Shown: in pieces, positions 12,851 through 29,678 of the stretch
Position numbering within the stretch: the stretch's first letter is position 1
Layout: each line of letters starts with the position of its first letter
Assembly (NCBI RefSeq): GCF_000143415.4
Contig: NW_003314273.1
Coordinates: 2,352,097 to 2,416,096, forward strand
DNA: 64,000 nt
Direction: 5' to 3'
DNA from: Selaginella moellendorffii
Taxonomy: Eukaryota > Plantae > Lycopodiophyta
Notes under the pieces: generated by a model
Database searches by the model: none
Seen by the model: the letters and a program-made list of their open reading frames with translations, nothing else
What the model was told of the DNA's origin: nothing
Translations under genes and position numbers: made by a program

Positions 12851-15800
12851 TCATAATATAAAATACCTGCTACAGTTCTTACACTCGGTCACCTCAAAGG
12901 ATCCTCCCACAACGTTGTAGACTCCGCAGGACACGCACTTGAGCCTGTTGATCTTTGCGGGCTTGAGCTGCTTGTAATAGTGAACGTAGCCCAGCCGCGG
13001 ATGGACGAGCGTCTGCGCGTGAGCGTAGCTTGCTCCTCTCTGCTGCGGATTCTGTGCCGGGAGAGATGGAGCCTTCTTCAGCTGAACGCAGCACTTGACA
13101 GGCTGGAGCTTGCACGCCTTGAGGTGTTCCTGGATGATCCCGACGCGGCTGTCACCAGTGATTTCTGTTTTACTGCTGCCTTCGGCCCCGGTGAAGGCTC
13201 TTAGCGACTTGAGTTGCGAGGAGAGGAGCAACGAGAGCTCGGCCGGCGGCTCGATAAGTTGGTCTTCGCAGTAAGCCTGTAAGTTACTGAGCTGCATCTG
13301 AACGTGAGCAATCTCCTGGACCAGACTGTCCCACTCGCTCGATCCTCCTGTTCGTTCTCCATCGAGCTCGCAGCTAAGACCTGTGGCTCTCGGGTGATCC
13401 TCGCAGCTCTCGTCCAGATATGCCAAGTCGATGTCCTCCACTTGAGTCAATGGCTCGTCACGCTCGTTGCTTCTCCTTTCCAGCAGCCCGTACATACTGA
13501 CGAAGTTGTGGCGGACAACCAGCCTTGCAGCGAGGAGGTGCTCGCAAGTGAACATCGTCTCGAGGCAGTCGCAGAAGTTTGTGAGGAGGTTGACGACGTG
13601 AGACTTGGCCGTGTCACCATTGCAGCCGTGAACTCTGAAAAGAAAACCCGGCTCGCTGAGTACCTCGAAACATGCTCGGTTATTGTTGTATTGAGCCAAA
13701 AAGCGTTCTGCAGCAGCCAAGCGCTTGCGCTCCGCCGAAGTGCTCGATTGACTGTGATAGCGCCTCGAATCACCTGAGAAAGTGTTAAGGACTCGAAAGA
13801 AAGGAAAAGACTGGTGGATACAAAGGACGTGTCTCTGCCGAAAAAACTCCTCCAGCGTACCACCCTCTGGCTTACTGCTTGTCAGGGCGCTTCCTACCAA
13901 AGCCAGAAGAAGATCACAATTGCTCTGGTTCATACGCCCTCCAAACAAGGAATACTTGATGAAGAGCCAGAAGTAACTCACTATGTTGATTGTCTCTACG
14001 TTTCCATGCTCGAACAACCTGCCAAAAGTCGGCCAAATTCTCCGCCAAGCACAATGAGAGCCCAACCATCCCATTTCCAGATAATCCACAATCTCCTTAA
14101 AACCACCATAGTCCTCCTGTGCATCAAAAACAAAAACAGGCCACTCAAGACAGAAACATGACAGAACTACCTTAAATTTGTTCCAAAGATTATCGAAATC
14201 GGCTTCAGAAGGGGCCATCATCATTCCATCCAGTTGGCGATACACATCTTTTCTCATTTCCGATGCGACCTGCTGCAAGCAATCAGGAAATAGTTACAAC
14301 GAAAAAAGGTTTTCACCTGTGGGAGAAGATTCTCAACCCAAGCTCTTTTCACGCAAAACCAGCAAAGCAGTAGTCGACAAGCGATCTGCTTACCGTCCCT
14401 CCAGCATTTCTCATCCCGAGAGACAACACTGAACAAAGCGTCAAAGCTCAGCCGCGACTTATCAATCAAAATTGCAGCTGGCCTCACAGACAGCTGCTTC
14501 AAAACTGCTGTCAATGCCAGCTTCAAGGCAATGCTCTCGTGCCTTGACCCCGTGTCAGCCGAGCACATCATGAAAAACACTGGCATTCCAATGCCGTCCT
14601 GGAAGACGTGATCAAAAACCATAACAAAATAGAGATAGAGACAGTAAGGCACCTGATTAGGAACGGCTGCCGCATGCAATGGAAGACCCCGTATACAGGT
14701 TGTGAAAGTCGAGTCGAGGGCCCAAACATTACCCGCAGAAAACCTTTACAAGAAAAACAAACGTCGTTATAAGAAGAATGAAGAACATAAGAAATGAAAG
14801 CAAGACCTTTCAGCCATTTCTCGCATCCATGGAGTCATGATGACACACACGAACGGCTGCTTCTCTTCCACGGGATTAAAAACGTCATACTGCTGATAAA
14901 AAATCACAGTCTTCTTTTTCCTGTGTGCGTCAACCTCCTTGAGCAACCGGACCCAATCGCTGCTTGAGATCTTGCCTAAAAGAAAGCGGTACAAAACCCA
15001 GCTGTATCAGGCAGGAAGATAAACATTGGACCATAAAAGAACGAAAAAACCGACAAACCTTGAGAGTTCAGCTCCATGGTTAACTGCGCCACCTCTTTCG
15101 GGATCAGATGAAAGCGAAAGGTAGCTTTGTCAAGGTCCGTAGCTCTGGACTTGAGTAGCATATCCATCCGCAACGACGCTCTTGCAACCGAAATCACGTC
15201 CCAGGACAAGTCAAACTCGTACAAAGCAGCTTCTTTTGCCGACGAATGGACGGGAAAGTTAACGTAATCTTCTTTGTCATTGGGATTATGCCCCCTGTGT
15301 GCCCTGTTGAGAAGTACTGTCACCAAGATATTGCTCGAATCTAGAAAATGGCTGTTTGCCTGCATTTGCTCAAAGTAACTCCCATGGCCGTCCTGGAAAT
15401 CTGGAAGTTGGCTCGAGCTTTTGGAGCCAAGAAAGTCCTCCGACGAATCCACGGAGGCTGTTCTCTCCGGCAAGTTTACTGGCTCTGTAAACTCCGGGTT
15501 GAGCTCGGGCAACTGAGAGATCCTCACCGGAATGAGAGTACGTACTCGAAAAGTGCATGGTAATCCTTGATGAGTAGCACCAACATTTTTGCTTGAGGAA
15601 TCGGCTCCTTCCTGCTTTCGAAAACCACGGGCACAAACCCAGGTGGTGACGATCGAAGGCTCAGGACTGGCGATCCTGTACGTGCTCTCCTTTCGCAGCG
15701 ATACCCTGTGCCGGATACAAAGACCCTCGATGAAATCATCCAGATGCTGCCAAGGAACAGTGTGAACTTCCGGCCACCTTTCAGGCAAGTTCTTGCGGAG

Positions 15801-16529
15801 ACGCTTGCTAGCCGGGGACTCGTGGAGCTGGTCATCGCATTTCGGGCACTCTCCAATCCTGGCCTTGATGAAATCCTCCGGGATGCCATGCTTCTTGTTC
15901 CCAGTAACGTAGAACAGCCCCAAGTTCTTGACAGTGTCGCGGAGGTTTAGACACGATCCACTGCCAGCCTCGACATGGAACTTATCGACGACGAAAGGCC
16001 ACTCCTCTCTGTAAGCTATGATCCTTCTTAACTTATCCCACTTGGAGCTCAAGCGTCGGCGCTTGATCCCATCGCTTTCCACGTCCATCACCACCAGAGC
16101 GCTGGACAGGGATTTCCATCGGCTCAAGAGAGCGTCGGCCACAGCGCGGTTGTTCCTCCGCTTCTCCGGGAAGCTTGGATCGGCCTTCTTGATCTGCGCC
16201 TCGCTTGGCTTGGAGCCAGAATCCAAGCACTTGACGGTCAGATCGTAAGCGGCAGCATTGAAAGCGTAGGATTCCAGCGATCCAGAATTATCTCGTGGCG
16301 CCTGGTGATGATTCTCTGAAGGCGCCGCTGCCGCTGCCGCTGCCGCTACACAAGAAGAAACCCTCTCTACATCCTCGAGGCTGTCTAGAAATTCTATCAC
16401 ATTGAGCTCCGCTGCTGGCTCAGAGACTCCAAAACCCTCAAAATCTACATCGCGTTGCCTGGCCGCCGCACCTGCTGCTGCGTCCCAGCCCTGACCCCAG
16501 CTGGATTCGTAAGCACTCATCGCTAGCAT
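12851..16529 (-). CDS. Mutator (MULE) transposase-derived, SWIM zinc-finger protein, multi-exon
   Basis: Spliced ORFs give WALDSTF, AILIDKS, LLCWFCV, TINIVSYFWLFIKY, SWIM CDC-x6-CEH and a terminal CxxC...CxxC. Short GT-AG introns link the ORFs. Confidence 0.8.
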
Positions 16530-22928: not shown

Positions 22929-24449
22929 GGCTGTGTGGCATTTGCCAAACTATGTATTAAAGATTTTGGTGCTATGCCAAAATATGTATTATCCGAGCAG
23001 CTCGCAGCAGGGCTTGGCAGAGAAACATCCTTCATATTTCTTTAAAAAAAATGCAATCTATTATGATGTTGCAATAGATCATTGTAGTGTTACACACTTT
23101 GACAAGAATTGAGGCCAGCATTTCATAACCCAGTTAGGGAGGACATATACATGCCTCGATCTTGCCAGCCATCCGGGAAAAATATCCACCGCATAAAAAG
23201 CAACCTCAACCTGGTGGGATCCAAGGACGTTCACAGCATGCTATTCATGATCAAGATTATCTGAGTATTTTCAATTCGGACTATTTCAACGAACATAACT
23301 TTAAAACTTTTAATGCTATGAAGATGCATCACATTTTACAAACTTCATTGCAGGATTATGGCGGTAGTTTGGTGAAAGCTGGAAAGAGAACTGCTGTAGT
23401 ATCATAGCCAGAATGACTTTGGCCTTGATCATCACAAATGACTAGCCGAACACCTACGGGCCAAATAAAAACGTGAGTACACAGAGTACAGTATGATATG
23501 GCACTGCCCAAGGGAGATTTATACAAGAGAGATTTTGAGAGATTTTGCAAATTGGGCTGCCCTCCTTGATGGGTATAAGTCTAGGTGAGCAATATATTAA
23601 CCTTCTTCTCACTGATTGGTAGTTTCTTTGTTGTCACATTGAAGGGCATTGAATTAATAAGAATTGAATTTGTGCCAATACCATTTATTTCTCTTCCCTT
23701 AAAAGCTAATTGAAAAATGTGATGGTTTTTAGTGGCCTTTTATATACCCTAAAATTCTAAGGATTCATTGTAATAATATATTTAAATTTCATATATATAT
23801 ATATATACAGATAAGCACTTCCATTATGCAAAATAACCTTTTATAAACATCAACAAATGTTAGTACTCATTTGACATAGGGCAATATAAAACTCTTTGCA
23901 TAACCAGAATTTATAAGGTTAGCTTATTTCTAAAGAGATGTGTTAATCTCTCAAGGAAAAGGAACACTAGTAGTAAAATCTCAAACTCAAGATTAAACTC
24001 ATTGCTTTTATTACTTAAAGTAGTTCTCATTTTTTTTAATCCAACAAAATTCCAACCTCCAAGAGTTCCAATAATAATTTTACAAAGAAGAAAGGCCATT
24101 GTAACTATTATACCAATTACTACTCACCATTTACACCAATCGCCAAGACTAAATAATCACATTCAATTGATAATAACATTCATGATGCATAGTTTTACTT
24201 TTGTTGCTAATTCTCGAATTATTAATTATACAAATGATTTGTACCATCAATTTAATCACTTTACAATGATTACCACCTATCATTTTTAAAATGATATTTG
24301 GCATTTGCACAAATTTCCCAAATGTTTACAAAGGATACAGTGGTACAATGTTTTAAGCATAGGCACTTGTGTAGATTAAAGTTGTGTGGATACTAAACTA
24401 ACACATGATAGAATCATACAAGATCTTTGCTGTAAAATGCTAATCTGCT

Positions 24450-25250
24450 GTCTTGAGAGCCACAGCCTCCACCTACATAGTGAAGAAATTCATTGCAAAC
24501 AACAAGTAACAGTGGCTGTGTAAGATGCTGGAGATATTGGGCAAGTGTAGAATGGACTTTGAAAAGGTAATGAACTGAAAGGGAGAATGTTGCTTTGAGG
24601 ATTGAACTGTTGGCAAGTCATGCATTGCCTTGAAAATGACAGGCCAATAGAAACCACCATTGTTGATCCCCCCAAATGACCATTATAAGGGTGAAGACTT
24701 TGAGAGTCTGGAACTTTAGCTTCTGTCAAGCAGCACAGTTGAGCTGTTCTCATGTATAGTGTTCCTCCCAACAAGCAAAATTCTGAGCCTTGATCTCCAA
24801 AGTCCATTGCCACACCACTGGCAAGTTGTCTGGGGACTCTTGTGATGCAAATTTGACCTTGGTGTCAATGAGTGCACGATAGATTTGCTTTTGTCAACTG
24901 CCCAGGGTTTGCTGGGCAATTTATACTCTTGGTTCTAGTATGCTCAAGAGTTGATTACATAGGAACTCTAAGGTTGTCAACGTAAAGTTAGAGGAGTGGT
25001 TCATTCTTGATGCAACTTTTCATATATCTTGCACTCAAAATAACTGTGACCTTGAGTTCCCTAGTCCACCCATGTGTTGGACCGCTTTGTAGCTTTGCTA
25101 AGATTTGTCAATGCTTATTCCCCATTGAGTGGTACACTCTAAGCCACTTGGGGTTGATGTTCATCAAGTAGTATTGGCAGCATGCTTGGCAAGCCCTGGT
25201 CGCTGGCCCTGAGCACTGTGTTGGCTGGCCCAAGAATCTCTGCTTAAACT
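24450..25250 (-). mobile_element. Possible decayed retroelement integrase region
   Basis: Fragments CMTCQQFNPQ...PFQSPF and LPSKPWAVD resemble the integrase CxxC and PxxPW motifs. Heavily disrupted. Confidence 0.35.
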
Positions 25251-25579
25251 CATTTCTTGGATTTTCAATGACAAAGCTTCTTATTGGTCACACTAATTGT
25301 GGCGAGTTTCTTTGGAGTAGCCTTCTGGTCACTGGAAACGATTCGGTATGCCGAGAGCCAGGCTTGGCTCCGTGGCACCACTTGGAGCAGGTGATCGATG
25401 TAGAGACAGATTTTCCTTATCACTTTTCTTGCAACATTGGCAGACGGAGAAGTCACAAAGCAAGCTTAAATGATGGAGAAAACCGGCATTTGATCTGAAA
25501 GCTCGTCGCTCTCAAAGACAGGCAAACGTCCTATTGTTGTTCTTTCCCTACAGTAAAAATTTTGAGCTCAAATGAGTAG

Positions 25580-26521
25580 CTACTCATTGCTGTCCTGCCA
25601 CGACTCAAGGGCCGCAAAGAACCTCTGCCAACCGAAGTAGACCCCCTCGATGATAAGAGCAGTCGGGTCCCTGGGATCGTCGTCGTCCTCGCGAGCACTC
25701 TCGAAGCACTTGAGGTAGACATCCCGGTTCACAAAGTCGTGGTGGCGGCCAGCGCCACCAGCAGCAGCAGCGAACAAGACGTTGGGGAACACAGCCACGC
25801 TGCGAAGCAAGTAGGCCAGCATCATCCTCCCGCATCGCCCATTCCCATCCACAAACGGATGGACGCACTCAAACTTGTAGAAGAATTCTGAGGCCAGCAC
25901 CAGGAGCTGCTCCACCGTCTTGCAGCTGATTGTCGTCCTCTCCTCCTTGAAGAGCCGCTGCAGATCCGCGTTGGTCTTGCTCACCAACTTGGACAGCTTC
26001 GGCCGGATTGCCCAGGCATCCGCGTAGAAGTGCTGCCTTCCGCTGCTCGTGATCGTCATTGCAACCTCGCTGCCAGACCGAAACAAGCCCGCGATGTCCG
26101 GCCTGCCCGACTCCATAAGCAGCTCGTGTGACTGCCTGAGATTGTAGTTGTTGACGCTGGGAGCCTCCTCCTGATCCTGGAGCCACCATGTCTTGTTGAA
26201 TGCTCGGGACAGGCAGCGGACTTGTTCCAATCTCTCGTCCGGAGCCACCACTTTGTCGTCCAAGTCCACTTGGAGCTGCTCCAGGGCGTGGAGTGTTTCA
26301 TCCCGGGTATCAAAGCCTTCCAGCTCCAGCTTGTTCACCTGGAACAGGAAGTCGGCCATGGCGTCGCGCTGCGCGTACACGTCCAGCGCCCATGCTTTGG
26401 CATCGCCGTCCAGCGCCAGGAACCTCTTCACGTACCCACAAATGGCGTCCACCATGCTGCTCGTCGCCGGGGCTCCGTCGCCATCGCACCTCCAAAAGGG
26501 CCTCTCCGCGTATCGCCCCAT
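25580..26521 (-). CDS. Fic (Fido) domain protein, intronless, 313 aa
   Basis: Canonical Fic catalytic loop FECVHPFVDGNGRCGRMML. GC-rich codon usage and an uninterrupted ORF. Confidence 0.92.
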   Translation of the reverse strand: MGRYAERPFWRCDGDGAPATSSMVDAICGYVKRFLALDGDAKAWALDVYAQRDAMADFLFQVNKLELEGFDTRDETLHALEQLQVDLDDKVVAPDERLEQVRCLSRAFNKTWWLQDQEEAPSVNNYNLRQSHELLMESGRPDIAGLFRSGSEVAMTITSSGRQHFYADAWAIRPKLSKLVSKTNADLQRLFKEERTTISCKTVEQLLVLASEFFYKFECVHPFVDGNGRCGRMMLAYLLRSVAVFPNVLFAAAAGGAGRHHDFVNRDVYLKCFESAREDDDDPRDPTALIIEGVYFGWQRFFAALESWQDSNE

Positions 26522-26823
26522 CTGTAAGCCCTAACCAACAAGGGCTCCATTTTATACCCTTTTCATTTTAAAGTTTACAAAAGGTGGCTATGTATAAAGC
26601 TTTCTCAAATTTGTGTAAACCTATATTCCGAGAATATTCCAAGGCCCCTCAAGATATACAATATGAGAGCCTAAACAATGTGTAACCATTTTCATGCATG
26701 GATATTTGTAGTACTTGGTACCTGAGAACCGAACATGCTATCCAGCTGGCCTGTTGAAATCCCACAAACTCACTTTCACAGCACAGGAAACTGTTTGTCC
26801 ATACCCCAAGTGTCACTTTAATC

Positions 26824-28428
26824 ATGCCGGTTGCAGCTCGAGCCCGCTTCTTCCCCTTGTTTTGCGGCGCAGAAGCACGAAATCAGCTTGAAATACAAAG
26901 ATGTCACACCCTGTCCAAAGATCACATCGCCAAGGTGAGAATCTCAACACTCTTAGAATCCTCAAAGTCTCACCTCCCGCGAGAATTCCAGGCCAAAACA
27001 GCCATGGACAAGTTCCTCCAAAGCGTCGAGTCGAATCCCCACAGACGAGACGCAGCCGAGCCTTGCTACTCGCTGCACGAGCCAGGAGACCTCGTCTATG
27101 GAACCGCTCTCGTCTTTCACGGATTCGGGCAATCTCCACAGCAGTGCCAGTTGCTCGCGGACTACCTGTTTGACAATGGCTTCAATGTCTACCAGCCTTG
27201 CCTTGCTCGCCACTATCTCGGAAATCCGACTCTAAACTGGCCGCAGGTGACACATCTTAAAGTTCGCTCTTTACTTTCATCTCCACCCAGGTCGATCTCA
27301 AGCCGGAACTGAAAGAGAAGATCCGGCAAAACTTCCTCAAGGATCCGGTCCTGGCCAAGGAGCTATATATCTCTGTAAGCCTTCTGCTATAACGTTTTCA
27401 TCCTGCTGACAGTTTGCTGGCCTGTGTTCTTCGTGATTGTCCTCCCAGGCGGAAGACACCATGCAGCGAGTTCGCTCGCTTTCCCCCGAAATGTCTGATA
27501 TGATCGCTGCCCTCGACCAAGGTGACTGTAGCCAGGATTTCCAGAGGTCTGTGAGCGCGGCTCTTCACCTCCAAAATGAACTAACCACTTGGCTGCCAGG
27601 TTTTTCGAGTCGAGCCACTTGGACTACTTCACGGAAGCCGAGCAGCGACTAGAAGAAGTGCGTGCTCTGCCAGGCCCGATCTTCGCGATAGGCATCTCGA
27701 TGGGAGGAGCCACTGCGTTGCATCTCGCCAACACTTATCCAGACACAATCTCGAAAGTCGTAGCGTACGCCCCGCTCCTCAAGGTAGGAGGATACTTAGG
27801 CTTCGAAACAAAAGAAGAAAGAACAAACTTACTAATGATCGATCGATTTTCTGGCCAGACAATGGATGATGCGAGGAGAGAATTTGCTCTGGCGATCGGC
27901 CCGCTGGACGTGAAAGAAACCGGATGGGAGCCGTCGCTCCAGTTCACAGTGGGATGCCTTGTGGCAATCGACCTGTGTGGGACTCGCGTCAGCCAATCCA
28001 ACATAGATAACCTCGCAAAGAAAGTCGCTACCTTGCTACTCTTCACCGCAAACGAAGACTCGGCCGACCTTCCAACGCAGGAGAAATTCGCGCAAAGACT
28101 AAAATCCATCTCCTCCGGTAGGATGCTTTGATCTTCAACACTGCGGAAAAATTCTCCCGTTGCTACTGTCCCAGATGGAGTGCCACACCTGCATTACACA
28201 TATCGCCGCGAGCTGGAAGTCCCGCACGCGATGATCCACCCAAACGAGGTAGGAAATCGAGAAATTCTCGAGAGATTTCTAACCTCTCGCTTGGCGCAGA
28301 GGCCGATCGCGAACAAGCTGTGGAGAAGAATGTACCAGGAGACATTTCGATTCCTGACCACCGGGAAGGCGCGCCAGGACGAGCTCGATTCGCTGCGCCA
28401 AGACGAAACCCTACCCCAAGTACCATAA
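26824..28428 (+). CDS. Alpha/beta-hydrolase (carboxylesterase-like), multi-exon
   Basis: Oxyanion motif LVFHGFGQS, nucleophile GISMGG, NEDSAD acid region and VPHAM His. In-frame short introns, e.g. 26935-26991 and 27247-27290. Confidence 0.85.
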
Positions 28429-28732
28429 ACCCTAAAACCCCAAATTCTCGGGAGCAAACTTTTATCTCCTCGTGAGAGCGAACAAACTAAACGCTAGAAC
28501 TTTGGATCAAACCTGAGAGATCTATTCCTATCCTAGATGGAAGTTTTTCGTTGTGATCTTCTTCTCAAGCTCCTGTGACTCTCGAAAGAACTTACAACTC
28601 TCTGGAACTTGACGCTCGCTCTACCTGCAAGGAAGAAAGAACGTCGATCAAAAACACGAGAAAAGAGAGAGGACCACCATCACCACTCGCCTGGAAGAAC
28701 TTGGAACTTGGCATGGATGGTGTGGAGTCGCT

Positions 28733-29488
28733 TCACTGCTCGCCATCCGAGGCCGTGGATTGCTGGCCTTGAGCCTGCGATTGCTGGGCTTGGGCCTGTT
28801 GATCCGGCTGCCACTGCTGCTGCTGCTGCTGCTGCGGCGACGCCATGTACTGCATTGGCGGCCGCTGCTGCTGCGCGTAGAGCGCTGGATCCATTGGAAT
28901 GGCCGGCCTTCCAATCACCCCCGGAGGAGTCTGCCCAGGAATCATGTAGTACTGCATGTCCGGAGCTCCGATCGGCAGCGCTGATCGCGAGACACCCAGC
29001 GCCTCGTCCTTGACATCCTCGCGCGGCACGATGTCCACCAGGAAATCGAAGATGTCCGTGCGAGTGACCGCCGCCGCGATGTCGTTCTTCTGGAGCGTCC
29101 GCCGCTTGTTCTCCTCGGTGTGCATCCACGCGCGCAGCGTCAGCTCCAGGATGAACATCTCGCACGCCTTGGCGAAGAGCACGGGCGCCTCGCCCGAGAT
29201 CATCCTCACGTCCTCGTCCGCCTTCATGATCTTCTTGATGCGCGCCAGGGGCAGGCTGTGCGTCTTGAAATCCATCACCTCCTGGACCTCTTGCATCTGC
29301 CCCATCCAAAACTCTTGCATCTGCCGCTGCTGCTGCTGCTGCAAATGCTGGTAGCTCATCCCCGGCGCTGGGAATCCCCCCGCTGGCTGCCCCGCCGCGA
29401 TCTGACCTAGCGCCATGCCCGGAGGAGCCCCAGCGGCCGCCATTCCCTGCCCGGCGTACTGCGATTCGTTCTGCGAGCTCTGATCCAT
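28733..29488 (-). CDS. NF-YC: Nuclear transcription factor Y subunit C (HAP5/CBF-C)
   Basis: [46 protein letters not shown]...[12 protein letters not shown] histone fold, with Gln-rich flanks. Confidence 0.97.
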
Positions 29489-29678
29489 GCTCACCCCTGC
29501 CACGGCCAGGAGGAAGGATCTCAGCTAGAGCGCCGCGCGGCGGCGAGGGATTTTCCGGGAGGAAAGATTGGAAATATCGGCCTACCTGGTGGATCGCGCT
29601 CGCGTCTCCCGGCCTGTGCGCCTTAGGGCTCGCGCTTCGTTGCAGGCCGTAAGATCCCACTAGTCCGTTGCCCTTCAC

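Follow-up and report, generated by a model that had tools for sequence, protein, structure and literature searches.

An expressed, intronless Fic-domain gene of Selaginella moellendorffii, probably encoding a class II-type enzyme of a lycophyte and fern family

Introduction

Does a land plant carry a genuine gene for a Fic enzyme of its own? The question is raised by positions 25580–26521 (minus strand) of a 64,000-nucleotide stretch of the genome of the lycophyte Selaginella moellendorffii (contig NW_003314273.1 of assembly GCF_000143415.4; the whole stretch is called the window hereafter), in which a first-pass annotation made from the sequence had pointed to an intact, intronless Fic-domain gene. 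According to a 2025 review, Fic proteins are absent in plants and fungi (PMC12409994), and the 2009 Fido paper placed them, among eukaryotes, in metazoa and a few fungi only (PMC2686095). Plant Fic proteins, given with no species and placed in a mixed “E2” clade with Dictyostelium and fungi, do appear in the supplement of Khater and Mohanty (2015; PMC4454073). That Selaginella has a Fic domain is already known, through automatic RefSeq and UniProt names and this passing mention. Our literature search found no paper on Selaginella or fern Fic/Fido proteins, and, as far as the searches show, family size, confinement to lycophytes and ferns, expression, selective constraint and the mis-modelling of most members are apparently undescribed.

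Here we show that the window gene is a genuine, intact and intronless Fic-domain gene of the S. moellendorffii nuclear genome, and that it is expressed. We consider it probable that this gene encodes a soluble, single-domain, class II-type Fic enzyme belonging to a family of lycophytes and ferns.

Gene, protein and predicted structure

The gene is described by the following features:

25580–26521, minus strand: intronless Fic-domain coding sequence (CDS), stop codon included (open reading frame list, Pfam, AlphaFold2 model and RNA-seq)
25826–25861, minus strand: catalytic Fic motif HPFVDGNGRCGR, H221 to R232 (read from the sequence)
26321–26338, minus strand: inhibitory-helix-like segment VNKLEL, V62–L67, with E66 at 26324–26326 (family alignment and profile alignment to FICD)
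26489–26500, minus strand: PFWR motif, residues 8–11, the N-terminal subfamily signature (PxWR in most plant and non-plant relatives)
25628–25648, minus strand: EGVYFGW motif, residues 292–298, the second, C-terminal subfamily signature (conserved in three family alignments)

The frame runs from an ATG through 313 codons with zero internal stops in the open reading frame list, and Pfam assigns to its product one domain, Fic (PF02661, residues 127–239), at 46.7 bits against a gathering cut-off of 24 (E 5.9e-12); neither a tetratricopeptide repeat (TPR) nor any second domain was found in the Pfam scan. NCBIfam and PDB sequence searches gave weak, core-limited matches only, to bacterial and metazoan Fic proteins. 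Residues 221–229 read HPFVDGNGR and are followed by C-G-R232, in agreement with the pattern HPFx[D/E]GN[G/K]R and its catalytic His, and the H, P, F, D, G, N, G and R of the motif are invariant across an 83-sequence family alignment. The complete HPFxDGNGRxxR loop reported at first pass is therefore confirmed, and so is the remark that a signal anchor and TPRs are missing: the N-terminus lacks a hydrophobic segment, and hydrophobicity over 19 residues peaks in the core helix at residue 233.

An AlphaFold2 (AF2) model built with the 83-sequence alignment reached a predicted local distance difference test score (pLDDT) of 92.9 and a predicted template modelling score (pTM) of 0.92. It consists of helices together with strands 155–157 and 163–165, which lie at the position of the beta-hairpin flap, and it agrees with the all-helical core of Fic proteins. 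A Foldseek search against the PDB returned 54 matches at E ≤ 0.001, the best 50 of which are all Fic proteins, headed by Dde_2494, human FICD, Caenorhabditis elegans Fic-1, BtFic and SoFic (template modelling score, TM, 0.58–0.66; probability 1.0). In an Atlas shape search, bacterial Fic clusters matched at TM 0.72–0.73 over the full length.

In class II Fic enzymes of the classification by Engel et al. (2012), the inhibitory helix acts in cis and lies N-terminal to the catalytic core. Its Glu obstructs productive binding of adenosine triphosphate (ATP), and in FICD this residue is also needed for de-AMPylation. In the window protein, the corresponding segment lies within residues 58–69 (FLFQVNKLELEG), where E66 and G69 each reach a conservation of at least 90% in the 83-sequence alignment. 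In the AF2 model a helix spans residues 39–65, directly followed by E66 and situated before the Fic core on the same polypeptide, and the family profile aligns with human FICD (E 4e-23) in such a way that E66 falls on the Glu of the FICD inhibitory motif TVAIEGN; the fern counterparts read VNKIEK here. As noted at first pass, the Glu is kept and Ser/Thr replaced: relative to the strict class II motif [S/T]xxxE[G/N], Val takes the place of Ser/Thr and Leu that of Gly/Asn. By the position of the inhibitory segment in the model, the window protein is classed as a class II Fic enzyme, with the strict motif only partly retained.

The enzyme would take adenosine monophosphate (AMP) or another nucleotide-derived group from a nucleotide and attach it to Ser/Thr/Tyr hydroxyls of its protein targets. 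Its auto-inhibition would come from E66, which would prevent ATP from binding productively at R232 and, as in FICD, may also take part in the reverse reaction, de-AMPylation. Lacking both a signal peptide and a membrane anchor, the protein would be active in the cytosol or nucleus. Taken together, we infer a soluble, auto-inhibited nucleotide-monophosphate transferase that is possibly bifunctional.

Transcription and splicing

Two stranded raw-read RNA-seq runs from one study were mapped on 24000–29500, with about 12% of each run being read, and a splice joint was counted from three or more reads. Two further features bear on the results:

26824–28300, plus strand: alpha/beta-hydrolase gene, divergent and intron-containing neighbour (Pfam Hydrolase_4/Abhydrolase; seven GT..AG RNA-seq joints)
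26550–26556, minus strand: TATAAAA box-like element, 22–28 nt upstream of the apparent transcript 5′ end at 26528 (sequence)

Every one of the seven joints of the plus-strand hydrolase gene occurs on first_mate_on- reads, and the first mate is therefore opposite to the RNA in these libraries. The Fic frame is covered over its whole CDS at a depth of about 4–8 by first_mate_on+ reads, as against 0–0.8 in the other orientation; because the coverage comes from first_mate_on+ reads, the Fic RNA is transcribed from the minus strand. Zero reads fell in the intergenic stretch 24000–24900 in these two runs, and no splice joint was reported inside 25580–26521 in either of them, as expected of the intronless frame proposed at first pass. 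In a transcript contig from another study, the match to the window stops at 26528 and is followed by adapter sequence. This position relative to the TATAAAA element suggests a very short 5′ leader for the Fic transcript, and the element may act as its promoter.

At position 25768, four reads of one RNA run leave the Fic gene for approximately 86 nt of other sequence. The 30-nt consensus past this point matches neither the window nor the retrieved loci, and the site itself is a GCT-repeat (poly-Ala) stretch.

Public gene models omit the catalytic core

Database protein searches returned no full-length public protein for the window locus, and the closest database proteins are S. moellendorffii models. 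We compared seven public v1 models, representing seven loci, with their DNA. One of them, SELMODRAFT_411522, belongs to the allelic locus (see below); its genomic translation is an open 313-aa frame with an intact Fic motif, whereas the deposited model has 221 aa, lacks residues 180–271 and hence lacks the catalytic core. In window coordinates, the excised part is:

25709–25984, minus strand: stretch called an intron in the v1 model of the allelic locus, 276 nt in frame, encoding residues 180–271, with GT..AG ends (model versus genomic translation)

RNA-seq depth within 25709–25984 equals that of its flanks. A true intron or exitron was rejected on the lack of any joint of at least three reads in the two runs together with the even depth; a rare isoform lacking the stretch is possible at this read depth.

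The same defect recurs in the other models. The DNA of SELMODRAFT_419851, SELMODRAFT_444864, SELMODRAFT_447619, SELMODRAFT_422537 and SELMODRAFT_418963 is open through an intact HPFxDGNGRxGR motif, and all five pass the Pfam Fic profile when fully translated, while no Pfam hit is recorded for the deposited models. Overall, the removed “intron” is open with an intact Fic motif in six of the seven v1 models; the seventh, SELMODRAFT_427919, keeps the motif and is frameshifted close to the C-terminus. In SELMODRAFT_419851, a stop occupies a conserved Trp codon that lies upstream of the annotated start. The excision of the core in the v1 models is a systematic annotation error. As the core is absent from their public models, neither the window gene nor its clade A paralogs (defined below) carry a Fic annotation, and domain-based surveys therefore miss most of the family.

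Authenticity of the locus

The gene lies among plant genes. In addition to the hydrolase gene, the following neighbour was identified:

28733–29503, minus strand: NF-Y/histone-fold gene, upstream neighbour, also present on the second haplotype (Pfam CBFD_NFYB_HMF, E 2.8e-18)

The window also carries intronless pentatricopeptide repeat (PPR) genes. The SELMODRAFT_411522 locus, on scaffold GL377580.1 (2.68 Mb), aligns collinearly with window positions 29544 to 24225 (96.1% identity over 5.3 kb) and onward to 22004, with an identical order of NF-Y-like, hydrolase, Fic and jacalin genes. Judged by this collinearity, it is the second haplotype of an assembly known to hold two; on either haplotype the frame is open throughout and no catalytic residue is missing.

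That the locus is contaminating or mis-assembled non-plant DNA is an explanation to which we assign practically no probability, and only the unusual range of taxa in which the domain occurs speaks for it. The two collinear haplotype copies stand in plant contexts of 64 kb and 2.7 Mb; heterozygous single-nucleotide polymorphisms occur at about 50% in same-species RNA reads, such that both alleles are about equally frequent; the stretch is present in sequencing runs from 11 studies; and the flanking genes are plant genes with introns, including the hydrolase gene with its seven RNA-confirmed introns. Haplotype collinearity, heterozygous RNA polymorphisms and plant neighbours together rule out contamination and mis-assembly. 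The host-like, GC-rich codons and the intron-containing neighbours described at first pass are borne out as well: the GC content at third codon positions (GC3) is 0.79 in the Fic gene versus 0.74–0.82 in the neighbouring NF-Y-like and PPR genes, with which its codon usage correlates at 0.55–0.74.

A multi-copy family in Selaginella and ferns

For the family census, an exhaustive profile search of 1.84 billion representatives was combined with cluster look-ups and a second profile search. The window gene is not a single oddity: it represents one of at least eight to ten Fic paralog groups in Selaginella, with relatives in ferns. The paralog loci sit between bona fide plant genes on scaffolds of 0.7–2.7 Mb and have open frames with intact motifs, and the shared plant signatures A[DE]FLFQVN and [IM]EGVY[VF]GW are present in two family alignments. 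The Selaginella paralogs of clade A measure 341–363 aa. Clade B comprises XP_024542721.1 and XP_024515747.1, which RefSeq names “adenosine monophosphate-protein transferase fic-1”, and clade C comprises SELMODRAFT_425001, SELMODRAFT_424999 and SELMODRAFT_421387, a one-scaffold cluster named “Fido domain-containing protein” in UniProt (e.g., D8SRP9).

The named relatives outside Selaginella come from the fern Adiantum nelumboides only, with two proteins, one of them at 38% identity. Two further proteins, from Logan contigs of 1.1–1.4 kb (SRR4210093 and SRR17638748/52/53), are fern-like only in that they group with Adiantum. No seed plant, bryophyte or alga occurs among the named matches of the profile searches and cluster look-ups. 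This agrees with the first-pass statement that Fic is not a standard angiosperm family, and as far as the searches reach, the family is most likely missing from seed plants.

Within clade A, one paralog (L010:1501–2592) has a hydrophobic, signal-peptide-like N-terminus, MLLRFILAIALVIAVDARASG, and another (L012:1501–2526) ends in a basic KKRRRK tail. The two features hint that paralogs may be sent to different compartments.

The closest paralogs are SELMODRAFT_427919 and SELMODRAFT_419851, which match the window over the gene body only (26533–25594) and show no similarity in the flanks:

L007:3001–3914 (GL377661.1) and L008:2800–3855 (GL377609.1), GCA_000143415.2: two Fic copies of approximately 90% identity, one frameshifted, the other with the stop at a Trp codon

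They appear to be dispersed, gene-sized duplicates in decay.

Selection and the case for a working enzyme

Rates of nonsynonymous (dN) and synonymous (dS) substitution were estimated by the Nei-Gojobori method. The haplotype pair gave a dN/dS of 0.42 (dN 0.012, dS 0.030), the window gene against an 88%-identical paralog 0.35–0.40, deep Selaginella paralogs 0.22–0.34 (rough values, as dS is saturated) and the fern genes 0.13–0.20. Every value is clearly below 1, and the family is under purifying selection.

Several points weigh against the view of the window gene as an auto-inhibited, AMPylating enzyme under constraint. Its expression is modest and was seen in two raw-read runs from one study only. 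Selection on this particular copy is weakly resolved because the allelic pair has few changes, and the saturation of dS makes the values for deep pairs rough. The closest paralogs are frameshifted or prematurely stopped, so the sub-lineage is partly decaying. Furthermore, autoinhibition may work differently or not at all, because V-N-K-L-E-L only partly matches [S/T]xxxE[G/N]. Finally, AMPylation is only the most common possibility, since Fic folds also carry out UMPylation, phosphocholination, phosphorylation and rhamnosylation.

Some of these points would also suit a relic that is transcribed but has no function, or a pseudo-enzyme without catalytic activity that serves as a binding or decoy protein: the nearest paralogs carry damage (a frameshift close to the C-terminus in one, a stop at the codon of the conserved Trp in the other), the dN/dS of 0.42 between the alleles derives from few changes, and expression is low to moderate. 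We nevertheless judge this explanation very improbable, because the full open frame and all catalytic residues are present on both haplotypes, the positions of the catalytic motif are invariant in 83 family members, dN/dS against paralogs and fern relatives is 0.13–0.40, and the AF2 model is confident. A working class II-type Fic enzyme thus continues to be the probable reading, and the results that could have overturned the first-pass claim did not materialize: no orthologs across land plants with a described function came to light, the gene is expressed with dN/dS below 1, and its haplotypes are collinear, not chimeric.

Phylogeny and origin

In two maximum-likelihood trees, for which support is given as paired values, the plant sequences as a whole are monophyletic (96/91 and 98/93). 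Clade A contains seven sequences from Selaginella and three from ferns (98/96), and in clade B one Selaginella protein is joined with one from Adiantum (94/82). With a root outside the plants, two or more copies are most likely older than the split between lycophytes and euphyllophytes; this number is drawn from clade A versus clade B only, because inside clade A the approximately unbiased (AU) test does not reject Selaginella monophyly (p 0.134). The sister of the plant clade is a large non-plant group with giant-virus members (95/93 and 99/96), which shares the N-terminal PxWR, NxxExxG, the Fic motif, the PFP turn and the C-terminal EGxWxGW helix. Bacterial-type Fic proteins, several of them with helix-turn-helix (HTH) modules, are split from the plant and sister groups at 100/99. 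The non-plant relatives are nearest to eukaryotic Fido clusters of the ESM Atlas labelled Ascomycota and Mollusca, labels that reflect language-model similarity without alignment and serve as leads only, and one of these relatives is present in EukProt. A 548-kb ENA contig (L005:5881–9029), probably eukaryotic, carries two tandem intronless Fic genes of 401 and 342 aa.

These relationships bear directly on the possibility that the gene was recently acquired by horizontal transfer from a bacterium, such as an endophyte or one living in soil. Such a transfer is suggested by the overwhelmingly bacterial distribution of Fic proteins, by the intronless gene, by the bacterial Fic clusters found as Atlas shape matches (TM 0.72–0.73) and by the multiple bacterium-to-eukaryote Fic transfers inferred by Khater and Mohanty (2015; PMC4454073). 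We hold it to be exceedingly improbable here. Only plant and PxWR/PFP-type sequences rank on top in the profile search of 1.84 billion representatives, and the signatures of the plant family, including the EGVYFGW-type pattern, were not found in relatives across 185,579 prokaryotic species genomes. In a generic HPFxDGNGR scan of prokaryotes, the best among the matches listed are 22–32% identical and confined to the core. In addition to the separate position of bacterial-type Fic in the trees, sub-clades that each contain lycophyte and fern members point to an age above the lycophyte-euphyllophyte split, and codon usage is fully host-like. A bacterial donor was accordingly rejected: no relative with the signatures was found in the prokaryotic genomes scanned, and the generic matches among those listed are limited to the core.

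An older entry from a large DNA virus, a relative of giant viruses, into an early vascular plant would leave the protein a Fic transferase all the same. One non-plant member (P0037), on a 3.1-Mb ENA contig (L095:1–20897), lies among tightly packed small genes of unknown kind together with Bro-N, KilA-N and DUF723 domains, which are typical of large DNA viruses; the setting resembles the genome of a giant virus or a viral element integrated in a large contig. A giant-virus metagenome-assembled genome in IMG/VR encodes a 315-aa member with the full family architecture, and the best non-plant core match (40% identity) lies on a 180-kb viral contig from the same resource. The best viral fold matches are wsv406 of white spot syndrome virus (WSSV) and a nudivirus FIC-like protein, and bivalve herpesviruses carry Fic as well (PMC5552708). 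On the other hand, the three viral sequences in the tree are scattered within the non-plant group, and none of them branches inside the plant clade or as its sister; the plant clade is old and deeply branched; and the non-plant sequences mostly come without a host organism label. We regard a viral origin as unlikely, and as to a viral donor, viral members exist and none groups with the plants in the tree.

The first-pass annotation had proposed a gene either horizontally acquired or anciently retained. A recent bacterial transfer finds no support, given a monophyletic plant clade with a sister group that is not bacterial-type Fic, which leaves ancient retention or an old, possibly virus-mediated transfer as the candidates. 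A broader scenario, which we consider doubtful and somewhat less likely than a viral origin as such, is that the family forms an ancient, expanded AMPylation toolkit of lycophytes and ferns that seed plants have lost. It would have been seeded by the capture of a giant-virus Fic gene in an early vascular plant, its paralogs would differ in address (signal-peptide-like start, KKRRRK tail) and in regulation (Glu, Asn, or a motif-less clade that may be constitutively active), and it might serve stress or immune signalling.

Other observations in the window

Minus-strand reads (first_mate_on+) reveal a spliced antisense transcript over the hydrolase gene, with CT..AC joints at 26909–26973, 27776–27832, 27970–28030 and 28212–28284; it may be a long 3′ untranslated region belonging to the NF-Y-like gene, or read-through in the direction of the Fic gene. 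At 28623–28690, immediately downstream of the coding part of the NF-Y-like gene, about 30 reads per RNA run and one contig show a 66-nt skip with non-canonical CC..CG ends, which could be a haplotype indel or an unusual intron. Elsewhere, two open frames on the minus strand, at 12851–14278 (475 aa) and 14976–16529 (517 aa), have no Pfam match at E ≤ 0.01.

Comparison with known systems

Contrary to the reported absence of Fic proteins from plants (PMC12409994), at least two lineages of seed-free vascular plants have a multi-copy, expressed and selectively maintained Fic family. The window gene itself looks ordinary for a Fic enzyme; what is unexpected is its host lineage. Fic-catalysed protein AMPylation thereby becomes accessible to study in plants, with a tractable entry and with chemistry that should be conventional. 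The tie of the plant clade to a poorly known Fic group of eukaryotes and giant viruses is, in turn, a lead on how Fic has spread among eukaryotes.

Some related systems are found within the same species. The proteins of clades B and C (RefSeq fic-1 and UniProt D8SRP9) share the plant clade and the catalytic motif with the window protein, at 27–34% identity. They differ at the position of the inhibitory Glu, which is kept in the window protein, replaced by Asn in clade B of Selaginella and absent, together with the motif, in clade C.

Human FICD/HYPE and C. elegans Fic-1 have the Fic fold (TM 0.58–0.66) and an identical catalytic motif. FICD, the best solved-structure match of the family profile, likewise has an inhibitory helix in cis, located before the core, and its Glu aligns. 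Its identity to the window protein is only about 17%, and the window protein, which lacks the transmembrane anchor and TPR of FICD, is not a FICD ortholog. The inhibitory motif reads VNKLEL in the window protein and TVAIEGN in FICD, the PxWR (N-terminal) and EGVYxGW (C-terminal) signatures are additional relative to FICD and Fic-1, and the Selaginella genes are multi-copy whereas FICD and Fic-1 are single-copy.

Bacterial class II Fic proteins (SoFic, BtFic 3cuc, CdFic and Dde_2494 4rgl) are similar in overall shape and are auto-inhibited in cis by an N-terminal helix, but they usually bear C-terminal HTH, MarR or Fic_N modules and lack the PxWR and EGxWxGW signatures. The “Fido domain-containing” proteins of eukaryotes and large DNA viruses (PxWR...PFP), which are uncharacterised and to which WSSV wsv406 and the nudivirus FIC-like protein are likened by fold match only, have the same architecture as the plant family, including (T)PFP and the C-terminal hydrophobic-EG-x-W-x-x-W, and are similarly intronless and approximately 300–400 aa long; they are 20–29% identical and fall outside the monophyletic plant clade.

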